Of a stretch of DNA of 64,000 bases, positions 2,285 through 61,943 are shown piece by piece. The notes below the pieces were generated by a model, which made no database searches, was not told the DNA's origin, and was given only the letters and a program-made list of their open reading frames with translations. This DNA comes from Camelus ferus (lineage: Eukaryota): contig NC_045727.1 in NCBI RefSeq assembly GCF_009834535.1, forward strand, positions 6,820,001 through 6,884,000. The letters are read 5' to 3'. How positions within the stretch are numbered: position 1 is the stretch's first letter; every line of letters starts with the position of its first letter. The position numbers and the translations under genes are program-made.

Positions 2285-2730
2285 TAGTTAAGCGGTTAAG
2301 CTCTGAAGCAGAACTTTCTGGATTCATGACCTTGACCCTTGGCTTGTGCAAGTTAACTGTCTCTATGCCTCAGTTTCTCCATCTATAAAATAAGGTAATC
2401 ATAGTTCCTGCCTTAAGGTGGGTTCTTAAGAATAAATGTGGCCATCTCCAACTCCCGGTCTTTGGCATCGCGTTCGGTCTTCGGCGTCGCGTTCGAGAAC
2501 AGCGGGCGACGAGCAAGCGGCGAGGGGCGGGCTCAGGCCTGGACAGCGCTCCGGATTGGACAACGCGGCAGGCCCCGCCCCTGCGGGAGCCCCCCGTCTG
2601 GCCGGGCGGGGGAGGGCCCTCCTCCCTCCCCGGGTGACGAGCCACAGCAATTAAAAAAAAAAAAGTGATCATCTCCTGAAAATACTTAACATAGTACTAG
2701 CACTCAGTAAGTGTTAGCTATATTATTTAT
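2285..2730 (+). mobile_element. MIR SINE, split by the CpG-rich insertion at 2450-2664
   Basis: gcctcagtttctccatctataaaat lies on the left of the insertion; tagcactcagtaagtgttagctatattatt continues on the right. Confidence 0.75.
2450..2664 (+). mobile_element. Unidentified CpG-rich retroposed insertion with poly(A) tail
   Basis: About 200 bp with roughly 25 CpG, an A12 tail (2653-2664), and flanks gtggccatctcc (2438-2449) and gtgatcatctcc (2665-2676). Confidence 0.65.
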
Positions 2731-6448: not shown

Positions 6449-6648
6449 AGAACTCATTATAAAACTACTCTAATTTGAAAAGACACANNNNNNNNNNNNN
6501 NNNNNNNNNNNNNNNNNNNNNNNNNNNNNNNNNNNNNNNNNNNNNNNNNNNNNNNNNNNNNNNNNNNNNNNNNNNNNNNNNNNNNNNNNNNNNNNNNNNN
6601 NNNNNNNNNNNNNNNNNNNNNNNNNNNNNNNNNNNNNNNNNNNNNNNN

Positions 6649-7575: not shown

Positions 7576-8236
7576 CACACACCTCTTCCACTCACGTTTC
7601 ATTGCCCAAAGCCAGTCACCAGCGTGGGGATAGATAACCCCCTGCAGGGAGGGCCGCTTCAGGAGGGAAACCCGAATATCTAGGAAGCAGTAATCCAAAT
7701 CTACCCCAGAGACACAGTCAGCTGGAGCTGAAGCGCAGCTGTCTCCTTCCGATGGGACATTTACTCTCTAGTTTGACACATTCATTACTCTTCATTCATT
7801 ACTCTTCATATATTACATTCATTTCCTGTGTGATTTAAGTTTGCAATCCCCCTAGTAAAGGGCCATAGAANNNNNNNNNNNNNNNNNNNNNNNNNNNNNN
7901 NNNNNNNNNNNNNNNNNNNNNNNNNNNNNNNNNNNNNNNNNNNNNNNNNNNNNNNNNNNNNNNNNNNNNNNNNNNNNNNNNNNNNNNNNNNNNNNNNNNN
8001 NNNNNNNNNNNNNNNNNNNNNNNNNNNNNNNNNNNNNNNNNNNNNNNNNNNNNNNNNNNNNNNGTATTTCATANNNNNNNNNNNNNNNNNNNNNNNNNNN
8101 NNNNNNNNNNNNNNNNNNNNNNNNNNNNNNNNNNNNNNNNNNNNNNNNNNNNNNNNNNNNNNNNNNNNNNNNNNNNNNNNNNNNNNNNNNNNNNNNNNNN
8201 NNNNNNNNNNNNNNNNNNNNNNNNNNNNNNNNNNNN

Positions 8237-11787: not shown

Positions 11788-11890
11788 GGGGGAGGGTATA
11801 GGTCAGTGGTAGAGCGCATGTCTAGCATCATGAGGTCCTGGGTTCAACCCCAGTGCCTTCATCAAAAAAAATTGTTTTAATAAAAATAAA
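11788..11890 (+). mobile_element. Camelid-type tRNA-derived SINE
   Basis: ggggagggtataggtcagtggtagagcgc...ggttcaacccc; degenerate TSD aaataa(c)agttgtt(a/g)aatt. Confidence 0.9.
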
Positions 11891-14960: not shown

Positions 14961-15915
14961 TTCCATCACCTCCCTCCCACCCAATACATTCCAGGCTCTC
15001 AGACACACGAAATTTCTCAGTGCCCATCTTTGCTCCCCCTATGTAGAAGCTGCATATTCTCCTCAGAACCCCTGCCCTGTGGAAACACCTCTGCCAAACC
15101 TTCCTTGACTCTCCTGTGTTTCCACCTTGACCCCACCTCTTCCTCAGGCAGCTCTTCCTTAGAGGTCCCCCCACTGTTCCCACGTCCCCTCCTCCCTGAT
15201 CACACCACTGCCATCTGGCTTTTGCCTCCCCCATTCCACTAGAACTGGTTTGACCAAAGCACAAATTACATCCATGCCATTCCCTCATATAGCACACTGT
15301 TCTTCTTTTCCAACTCCATTCCAATCTGTAATTACATATTCATTTATGGGTTTCCTTCTAGAATGTAAGTGCCATTAACTCAAGGCTAAATCCACGTTGC
15401 TAAGTCCGATGGACACTTCCGACTTTTATCTTGACCTGACTGCACCACAGAATTTGACAATGTATAATATATATCACTCCTTTCTCTCTCTCTCTCTCTT
15501 TAAACTTTTTACTTCAAAATTTTTCTATAGAAAAGTTGTAAGAAAAGTTCAAATACCCACATCTCCTTCACCCAGATTCACCAATTACTATTTTTCCTTT
15601 TATATGTTTATCAATTTTTTTATAGACCGTGGCAGAGTAAGTTACAGTCATTATAACCCTTCACTCCTAAATACTTCAGCATGTTTCCTAAGAACAGAGA
15701 TTCTCTATTATATCATCATAATGATCAAATTTAGGAAAAATAACACTGATGAAATACTACTGTCAGTCCATCTGGGCNNNNNNNNNNNNNNNNNNNNNNN
15801 NNNNNNNNNNNNNNNNNNNNNNNNNNNNNNNNNNNNNNNNNNNNNNNNNNNNNNNNNNNNNNNNNNNNNNNNNNNNNNNNNNNNNNNNNNNNNNNNNNNN
15901 NNNNNNNNNNNNNNN

Positions 15916-20037: not shown

Positions 20038-20297
20038 NNNNNNNNNNNNNNNNNNNNNNNNNNNNNNNNNNNNNNNNNNNNNNNNNNNNNNNNNNNNNNN
20101 NNNNNNNNNNNNNNNNNNNNNNNNNNNNNNNNNNNNNNNNNNNNNNNNNNNNNNNNNNNNNNNNNNNNNNNNNNNNNNNNNNNNNNNNNNTGATTCATTT
20201 ATTTTTAATGACACCTCAAGACTCTCCCACAAGGCAGTTAACTTACTGTTCTAAAATCATTGAGAAGTGAGTAATTCAGAAGTGAGTTATTCTAGTT

Positions 20298-27938: not shown

Positions 27939-28438
27939 TCCATGAAATGTACATGTGTGCATATTATGTATGTGTATATTTTAATTCTCAGATTTTGAGG
28001 ACCTAGGTTTCCAATACTGGAAAAGCCCCACTAACTGCTTAGCACAAAGGGCCCATGCCAATGACCTACCATCATGAACTTTCAAAATGCCAAGCATTGT
28101 ATTACTTTCAAGAGATGTTAAAANNNNNNNNNNNNNNNNNNNNNNNNNNNNNNNNNNNNNNNNNNNNNNNNNNNNNNNNNNNNNNNNNNNNNNNNNNNNN
28201 NNNNNNNNNNNNNNNNNNNNNNNNNNNNNNNNNNNNNNNNNNNNNNNNNNNTATAAAACAGACAAGAGTTAACNNNNNNNNNNNNNNNNNNNNNNNNNNN
28301 NNNNNNNNNNNNNNNNNNNNNNNNNNNNNNNNNNNNNNNNNNNNNNNNNNNNNNNNNNNNNNNNNNNNNNNNNNNNNNNNNNNNNNNNNNNNNNNNNNNN
28401 NNNNNNNNNNNNNNNNNNNNNNNNNNNNNNNNNNNNNN

Positions 28439-46300: not shown

Positions 46301-47848
46301 TCTCTACTGAAAAAAATACTTTAAATAGCCTCAGAGAACAAGCCTCAAATGTCAAATTGACTTTATTACTAATGGAAAATCTGACCTGGGAATCCTCACA
46401 ATTACGCTCTTCAAGTTTTGCCTCTGTTCTTAAACCCAATGAACCAGAACCACCACCATTATTATGGAAGAAAGCAATTTCTTTAGAAGATGGGTCACAA
46501 AGTGAAGCAGGGAAGTGGGTAGAATTAATTTTATACACTACTGGGAATCTTGATATTAACATTTCAGACCCCCTTCCCTTCAAAAAACGAATACTACGTG
46601 ACAGCTACAAAACAGCAAGGAGTTCCAATTTTAGTTGTAAACAGCCAGTTTTGGGTTAATAGTCTCTCTTGTGTCAGGCAAAGGCTGGAGGGTTAAATTC
46701 AGTGGAGCAAGTGGGTGAATGCATCTGATCCATTTTAGCAGTTCCAGATTTAAAGTGAGAAGAGAAAAAACAGTCCGCCAGCACCGTCAGTGAGTTATTT
46801 TAAAACCTCAGCTACTTCCACAGTACTCTCTAAGTAGAGTCATTAGTCCAAATCAAAATGTGAGGAAAACTTACAGCAGGATGTAAGATGCCTTAAAAGC
46901 AGTATAAGACCAAGGCCAAGGGAAGATGCTTATCTTTCAAAAAGAAACAGCGTGATAAGCGCTCAGGCCAAGATGGGGAGCCCCAGTCATACTCCTTTTG
47001 CTGAAGGCATTTAAAACTCAATGAAACGTGTTTTGCCAGAAATACTGTTTCACCGAAATACTCCGCACTATTGCAAAGAGAGTAAAGCGCCTCAGGCGAC
47101 CTCTGAGCCACGCGCCACGACTGCTGGTAAGTAAGGAAGAATGACAGCTTCCAAACTGACAAAAGCCAAACACTTCAAGAGCCTGGTGAGACTGTGAGAG
47201 GCCTGTTCTGCACTGGTGGAGGCGCCGGCCAGGACTCCTGCAAACACTTCCCAGATACAGCAGGGAAGGGAGAGACCCACCTTTCAACAGACGAGTCACA
47301 AACTCTGACTGCCAAGGCCGAAGAAGAGAAACACACAGAATACAGAAGACAACAACACCCCAATACTGAACAACAGAATAAGCAACTTTCAAGTCTTTGA
47401 AACAGTAAAACGCTCCAAGGGACCTTATTTCAAAAATTTCTGCCACCACTGGGAGAAGGAGTGTAATTTCTTCAAAATGCTTAGGTGATCTAACACATCC
47501 CCTCAGACCACTGTCTACACTGTAAGACACCAGTCACCGTGGGTCCTTTCTTTAGAAAAACAAGACTTTTCTTTTACTGCATTTTCACCCTCAAAACATG
47601 TCTCATAAAGTCTAAAGATTACGCCTTAGCAAGAGGAAGATCGGAAGCAACACAATGACAANNNNNNNNNNNNNNNNNNNNNNNNNNNNNNNNNNNNNNN
47701 NNNNNNNNNNNNNNNNNNNNNNNNNNNNNNNNNNNNNNNNNNNNNNNNNNNNNNNNNNNNNNNNNNNNNNNNNNNNNNNNNNNNNNNNNNNNNNNNNNNN
47801 NNNNNNNNNCATCTGATTTTGCCCCTCAGTGTGTTGAGCTGTCAGGGC

Positions 47849-60825: not shown

Positions 60826-61842
60826 CTCAGGAACTCAGAGTGGGGGCCTGGGATGGGGGGAGGGGTGAACCACAGCAGCTCCATCTCCTGTTTTCCCTGC
60901 ACCCCCACGGCCTACAGCTCCTTTTCTGCATGTTGTTGGACACGGACATCTACTCACTGGGGAGGAGAAAGAAGGGTTCCATCCACAGAAAGTTGGAAAG
61001 TCAATGGATCAGAAAGCGAGAGGACAGGGGCCTGGGGAGTGGCAGCCCAACATTCATGTCACCACTGCAGGAACAAGCACCACACTTGCGCTGAAAGTGC
61101 TGGCCAGCAAAGAACTTCAAAATGTACCACTTACAGAAGACTTCCTGTCAGTGCCTCAATCTGTCTACACATTTTATTTCAACAGTCATGGCATCTTACT
61201 TTTTGAATGAGTCTCTAACTCATAAGGTTCCTTAACTTGACATGTGTGGATATCTTTTGTCAATGAAACACCAAGCTTCCTGAAGTCAAGCGTTACTTTA
61301 CAACGCTCAGAGTGGGGATGGAGCAGATGCTCAACACATTTTGCCGAATGAATACACTTACTGTGTACAACAGACCAAAAGCACACTGTTTTTCTCTAAA
61401 TGCTTATAATACAACACTTAAGGGGAAAACCATGAAGATCCCTTTTCTTCCCAGAGCACAGGACACCAGAAGCAGCAAACTCAAAACAGGAGTGAGACAG
61501 CCAACAATCCTTTCCCAAGTCAGCTTCCCCGATTGTCCACTAAACCAGCTATGCAGATCCAAGAAAAAGCGTGCGAGACTGCTGCGGGGGCACCAGGGAG
61601 CAGAGCCCGACTACAGGGAGCCCCACTAACAATCTCCACTCCAGGCCATTTGTTGGCAATAAAGATGAACAGTTGCACAAGACTGCGGCTTTGGGGTCTC
61701 TCCTTCCCAAAACTCACCCCCGCAATGGGACATTTCAGAAACATACTGGAGGATGGCTCTCATGGCCACAGTACATCGAAATCGATGATCAGTAAGAGGG
61801 CAATTGGAAGAGGATTTGTTTACTGGTAAGATAGAGCCTTGT

Positions 61843-61931
61843 GGGGAGGGTATAGCTCAGTGGTAGGGTATGTGCTTAGCATGTACAAGGTCCTGGGTTC
61901 AATCCCCAGAACCTTCATTTAAAAAAAAAAA
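61843..61931 (+). mobile_element. Camelid-type tRNA-derived SINE beside the exon 4 donor
   Basis: ggggagggtatagctcagtggtag...ggttcaatcccc, poly(A), and TSD atagagcctt (61831-61840, 61932-61941). Confidence 0.92.
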
Positions 61932-61943
61932 ATAGAGCCTTAC

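Follow-up and report, generated by a model that had tools for sequence, protein, structure and literature searches.

A CpG-rich block of 203 nucleotides situated inside an old MIR element of the camel genome is read here, with moderate confidence, as a young retro-insertion of a non-coding cellular transcript of about 203 nt, derived from a CpG island and placed in its present position by L1-mediated target-primed reverse transcription (TPRT). The analysis covered a window of 64 kb of the camel genome; all coordinates given below are positions within this window, and the insert lies on the + strand. L1 target-primed reverse transcription is recognised by a poly(A) tail, a target-site duplication (TSD) and an A-rich target, and each of these three can be placed around the block, as in the following lines.

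2428 to 2437, + strand: A-rich target, AAGAATAAAT, upstream of the left TSD copy, L1-endonuclease-like; the TSD may begin within it
2438 to 2449, no strand: left TSD copy, GTGGCCATCTCC, from sequence reading and repeat finder
2450 to 2652, + strand: inserted body, 203 nt, non-coding, matching no known RNA family; the copied RNA has the sense of the + strand
2653 to 2664, + strand: poly(A) tail, pure A12, from sequence reading
2665 to 2676, no strand: right TSD copy, GTGATCATCTCC, from sequence reading and repeat finder
2677 to 2735, + strand: presumed right-hand continuation of the interrupted MIR, judged by the MIR consensus

Direct reading of the sequence places the GC-rich body at 2450-2652 and finds it bounded by AT-rich sequence on both sides. 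The two copies of the 12-bp TSD directly flank the insert with its tail and are identical at 10 of their 12 bases; their length lies within the range of about 7-20 bp usual for L1-mediated retrocopies. For a 12-mer with no more than two mismatches at one given placement the probability is P = 3.8e-5, and for this reason the duplication is not regarded as a chance event. According to the repeat finder the direct repeat extends into the A-rich target (2428-2449 / 2655-2676, 22 nt, 77%). CTT/AAGAATAAAT, to be compared with a TT/AAAA-like endonuclease target, stands immediately 5' of the left copy; the tail and the first bases of the TSD cannot be told apart, which leaves the exact nick without a fixed position. 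The sequence-only reading of this DNA had described an A12 run, a 12-bp near-duplication and an A-rich site on the left, and all of them are present where it put them. It had also proposed that the block was inserted by the L1 machinery, a proposal which gains support from the same poly(A) tail, TSD and A-rich target, found in like manner at a tRNA-Ala SINE of the window described below. The anatomy as a whole matches an L1-type target-primed retro-insertion, and the L1 machinery was almost certainly at work.

The flanks are taken by us to be one interrupted MIR, an old SINE, on the basis of the MIR consensus, with the left part ending at 2449. When a single TSD copy is retained they join, on the same assumption, into one continuous old SINE. 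Low-stringency BLAST (E <=0.01) found no sister copy of the rejoined flanks in the window, and no Pfam domain was found in ten of the window's long ORFs, so that no host gene was identified.

The mismatches between the TSD copies are two adjacent bases, GC in the left copy (2441-2442, beside the 5' end of the insert) and AT in the right one (2668-2669). Judged by the MIR consensus, the right copy looks ancestral, and the left copy presumably took an AT to GC double change. Candidate causes are a multinucleotide mutation, a scar left by repair at the 5' junction and biased gene conversion. Two differences in 12 bases exceed what is expected for an insert without visible CpG decay, and this counts against the reading of the block as a young retrocopy.

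The composition of the body is what sets it apart from its surroundings. Positions 2450-2652 have 72.4% GC and contain 26 CpG and 25 GpC dinucleotides, with a CpG observed/expected ratio (o/e) of 0.98, as against 0.37 and 0.43 in the 300-bp flanks. It is the sole stretch of the 64-kb window with GC >0.55 and o/e >0.6, and under the thresholds of Gardiner-Garden and Frommer (>=200 bp, GC above 50%, CpG o/e above 0.6) it qualifies as a CpG island, its 203 bp being a borderline length. The abrupt GC-rich block of about 200 bp with roughly 25 CpGs, reported earlier from the letters of the sequence, is matched by a measured 203 nt and 26 CpG. GC boxes, an inverted CCAAT and GTTCGAGAAC, as well as a 19-nt tandem duplication, had been listed in the same reading; the motifs were all located again at the same positions, and the duplication was recovered both by TRF and by the repeat finder.

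2456 to 2495, + strand: 19-nt tandem duplication (TRF: period 19, 2.1 copies, 90% match, score 66)
2491 to 2500: B-box-like GTTCGAGAAC, from sequence reading
2523 to 2582, no strand: cluster of GC box, inverted CCAAT and GC box, from repeat finder and motif count
2524 to 2531: GC box GGGGCGGG, from sequence reading
2555 to 2559: inverted CCAAT, ATTGG, from sequence reading
2571 to 2581: GC box GGCCCCGCCCC, from sequence reading

Two of the GC boxes make a perfect 9-nt inverted repeat (2523-2531 / 2574-2582, repeat finder). When the insert is shuffled by mononucleotides, 0.66% of the shuffled sequences attain the joint count of three GC boxes and one CCAAT; this enrichment (P about 0.007) is modest and largely an effect of composition, since with 72% GC such boxes are nearly to be expected by chance. 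GC skew changes sign within the body, from positive values at 2470-2550 to negative ones at 2570-2650. This pattern is at odds with a divergent promoter that has the CCAAT box at its centre, which counts against a promoter reading of the block; the better match, if anything, is a + strand transcript beginning close to the left end.

The copies of the tandem duplication differ at two sites, 2463 (T/C) and 2467 (A/G), both of them CpG to TpG/CpA changes, and this decay may have arisen in the parent or after the insertion. The sole ATG of the insert lies on the minus strand (2466-2468), downstream of the CCAAT and the GC boxes of that strand. It is probably a product of CpG decay and no start codon, because the other tandem copy has ACG.

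The tRNA-derived SINEs of the same window can serve as positive controls.

11792 to 11861: head of a second tRNA-like SINE (Rfam 43.3 bits; ARAGORN names no anticodon)
61831 to 61840 and 61932 to 61941: perfect 10-bp TSD of the tRNA-Ala SINE, ATAGAGCCTT
61846 to 61917: head of the tRNA-Ala SINE (Rfam tRNA 49.5 bits; ARAGORN anticodon AGC)
61921 to 61932: A12 tail of the tRNA-Ala SINE

The tRNA-Ala SINE at 61831-61941 is a young L1-mobilised element. Behind the head at 11792-11861 come an A-run and a simple repeat rich in A. Both SINEs (61846-61917 and 11792-11861) have an insertion signature like that of the insert, with the A12 tail and the TSD demonstrated for the one at 61846-61917. They carry a Pol III head scoring 43-50 bits, whereas the CpG-rich insert has the signature without the head and shares nothing with them beyond the A-run.

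It was claimed earlier that the block resembles no known small RNA or SINE, and this is upheld by blank results of Rfam and ARAGORN on a window whose control tRNA-SINEs are scored at 43.3-49.5 bits. When the body was searched against Rfam at E up to 10, no family reached even E=1, and neither tRNA nor 7SL nor 5S was matched. The known structured small RNAs (snRNA, snoRNA/scaRNA, 7SK, RMRP, TERC, vault and Y RNA) likewise gave no match. The best matches were unrelated lncRNA, miRNA and bacterial models below their gathering scores (lncRNA 24 bits vs 70). ARAGORN found no tRNA in the body, and its fold is no better than that of shuffled sequences (MFE z = +0.73, with 149 of 200 shuffles equally stable). 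There is no Pol III T-run terminator in the body, no second copy of the body in the 64-kb window and no L1 sequence attached to the insert. Two origins suggested before for the block fared worse. A Pol III SINE or ncRNA family is not supported, in view of the missing tRNA and Rfam matches, the fold z of +0.73 and the single copy in 64 kb. Nor is an rDNA fragment supported, the Rfam search having covered the mature rRNAs and given no SSU, LSU or 5.8S match. An H/ACA RNA was also considered and rejected: its ACA, at 2644-2646, lies 6 nt from the end where 3 nt would be required, and there is no other support for it.

Coding tests were equally negative. GC content by codon phase is flat in the body (0.71/0.72/0.75), without codon periodicity; no ATG occurs on the + strand of the insert, and the open frames of the body are those expected at such a GC content. 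Protein word searches with - frame 1 and + frame 0 of the insert gave no candidate. It can be said that the body is non-coding and that it belongs to no known RNA family and has no notable structure.

As regards age, TpG and CpA are not in excess in the body (TG o/e 0.58, CA o/e 1.01), and visible CpG decay is limited to the two differences between the 19-nt tandem copies. The pure A12, the CpG o/e of 0.98 and the absence of a TpG/CpA excess suggest that the insertion is young, and the recent origin proposed by the sequence-only reading is favoured by the same values. Under the preferred explanation the richness of the block in CpG would come from its youth and from an unmethylated island as the template. 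A total of 442 ORF-preserving L1s have been counted in the dromedary and 424 in the Bactrian camel (PMC8605555); with hundreds of such elements in Camelus, the L1 machinery was therefore recently available.

One hexamer stands at the 3' end of the insert.

2650 to 2655, + strand: ATTAAA hexamer running directly into the tail, the only poly(A)-signal hexamer in a scan of 2591-2676

At the proper distance from the tail, 10-30 nt, the hexamer scan of 2591-2676 detected no canonical poly(A) signal. Since ATTAAA abuts the tail and none stands 10-30 nt upstream, the 3' end is not a canonical mRNA end, and the missing spaced signal weighs against the 3' end of an ordinary mRNA and in favour of an RNA which was terminated early or internally primed. 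Possible routes to such an end are an encoded A-run primed by L1, non-canonical oligo(A) addition or cleavage inside an A-run. The kind of source RNA is suggested by the composition, and a promoter-proximal source is preferred because of the non-canonical 3' end, the CpG-island composition and the lack of any coding signal. The most likely template would be a short promoter-proximal Pol II RNA, perhaps the first part of a transcript (5' exon or 5' UTR) that stopped early, at or within an A-run, or else an upstream or antisense promoter RNA. The sequence of events would then be a nick by the L1 endonuclease in the A-rich site at about 2428-2438, priming by the T-rich bottom strand on the A-tract of the RNA, and joining of the cDNA at 2450, leaving a TSD of 12 bp or longer.

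A promoter-associated RNA, which had been proposed earlier as one of the sources, is plausible, being compatible with the composition and with the missing coding signal. The more far-reaching version of this proposal holds that such an RNA moved a CpG-island promoter core (GC boxes plus CCAAT) which is unmethylated in the camel germline and forms a new CpG island or transcription start site; this is thought improbable, and if true it would represent a promoter travelling alone, without a retrogene. At present the block is best treated as a processed fragment, presumably inert.

Metagenomes were also scanned with a 20-mer around the CCAAT box, which gave 5 loci in GC-rich (56-66%) contigs with matches of 20-25 nt only. 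As candidates for the parent locus these were rejected, being bacterial GC-rich contigs with chance matches of 20-25 nt. A scan of viral contigs with a 25-mer of the insert gave 0 matches.

Words of the insert were looked for in sequencing runs as well. Of the 31-mers of the body 21 were sampled, and 16 DNA-type runs from three organisms contain every one of them. The run table lists 20 runs with insert words in all, which come from 11 studies, and the 16 DNA-type runs come from several of them. One interior substitution removes about 31 of 173 words, and the calculated chance that all 21 sampled words would miss it is about 0.02; with 21 of 21 words present, an identical interior copy therefore exists in all three organisms. 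The query consisted of words of the insert interior, and in other organisms the runs may owe these words to the parent locus instead. Because the words are found in DNA runs of several studies, the insert sequence is no invention of the assembly. Among runs recorded as RNA, a single one has any insert words, at a fraction of 0.10. One run of organism C (X21, contigs of about 2 Gb) has 0.05 of the insert words, while another run of the same organism (X14) has all of them; the shortfall is either GC-rich drop-out or presence/absence polymorphism.

Several other explanations have to be weighed against the preferred one. Most L1-mediated retrocopies derive from mRNAs and are heavily 5'-truncated, so the block might be a truncated processed pseudogene, namely the last 200 nt or so of an mRNA or lncRNA whose 3' end lies in a CpG island, for example one overlapping the promoter of a neighbouring gene. 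This usual origin, the tail and TSD and a + frame which ends in TAA exactly at the tail speak for it; it is nevertheless judged unlikely, as no poly(A) signal stands 10-30 nt before the tail, 72% GC and a CpG o/e of 0.98 are unusual for a 3' UTR, and codon periodicity is missing. The distance of the poly(A) signal is likewise a problem for an orphan L1 3' transduction, an alternative absent from the earlier reading, in which an L1 is read through into unique DNA and severe 5' truncation leaves only the transduced piece, a tail and a TSD. Its expected anatomy (unique sequence, poly(A), TSD) is identical to the one observed, the process is well documented (PMC7058536), and L1 3' transduction has been noted in camelids (PMC8605555). 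L1s, however, are mostly in AT-rich DNA and not commonly followed at once by a CpG island, and the insert has no L1 sequence attached, so that this origin is rated as quite unlikely.

An uncatalogued low-copy retroposon or ncRNA family of camelids, either a Pol III or a composite VNTR-type one, could account for the 19-nt tandem duplication and the B-box-like GTTCGAGAAC, and the fact that no known family matches leaves room for an unlisted one. A head similar to tRNA, 7SL or 5S is missing, although with the same tools the control tRNA-SINEs reach 43-50 bits. The fold of the body does not surpass that of shuffled sequences, a T-run that could end Pol III transcription is lacking, and the 64 kb contain the body only once; the probability of such a family is accordingly put low. 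Lower still is that of a retro-inserted 45S rDNA spacer fragment (ETS, ITS or IGS). Spacers of rDNA have the same high GC and CpG content, but no rRNA model of Rfam is matched, Pol I transcripts are normally without polyadenylation, and the words occur in one RNA run only, at 0.10, whereas pre-rRNA spacers are abundant in RNA-seq. That no insertion took place at all, the block being an assembly chimera or a native CpG element, is barely credible. In its favour it can be mentioned that the support for the sequence from the runs concerns words of its interior. A chimera, on the other hand, would not place a TSD and an A-tail precisely where the GC content changes; 16 DNA-type runs from three organisms and several independent studies contain the sequence; and the flanks, in our own reading, are continuous old SINE with one TSD copy.

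The preferred reading, a retro-inserted CpG-island transcript, can be compared with systems already described. An overview of L1-mediated retrocopies of cellular RNAs is available (PMC4151081), and retrocopies of pri-miRNAs are a non-coding case (PMC7692494). With such processed retrocopies the insert shares the poly(A) tail, the TSD, the A-rich target and the absence of autonomous coding capacity; it differs in being only 203 nt long, in its CpG-island composition and in having no properly spaced poly(A) signal. Okamura and Nakai in 2008 reported retrotransposed core promoters, which move together with retrogenes as a consequence of dispersed start sites (PMC2386082). The camel insert could likewise have carried GC boxes and CCAAT via an RNA intermediate; in that work a functional retrogene is attached and activity was shown, whereas the insert has no gene body. 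A further parallel is PPP1R26P1, a truncated retrocopy whose CpG island in intron 2 of RB1 led to an alternative promoter and an imprint (PMC3839921). There too a truncated retrocopy brings a CpG island into non-island DNA, although that island is larger than the camel block, has a known parent and is shown to be differentially methylated and active. Orphan L1 3' transductions (PMC7058536) resemble the insert in consisting of unique non-repeat DNA with a tail and a TSD and no L1 sequence; they require a source L1 upstream of the parent sequence.

The insertion event is of an ordinary kind, one more L1-mediated retro-insertion of cellular sequence, and its main use would be that of a young presence/absence marker for camels. 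It is also a reminder that retroposition can deliver orphan CpG islands. If the parent was a promoter-associated RNA, nature would here have supplied a clean case of a promoter fragment retrotransposed on its own, with no gene body attached, and a test of whether 200 bp of CpG-dense DNA with Sp1/NF-Y-type motifs suffices to remain unmethylated at an ectopic site.

Besides the elements described, the window contains eight runs of N, 128-193 bases each and 1249 N in total, at the following positions.

6488 to 6648: N run
7871 to 8063: N run
8074 to 8236: N run
15778 to 15915: N run
20038 to 20190: N run
28124 to 28251: N run
28274 to 28438: N run
47662 to 47809: N run
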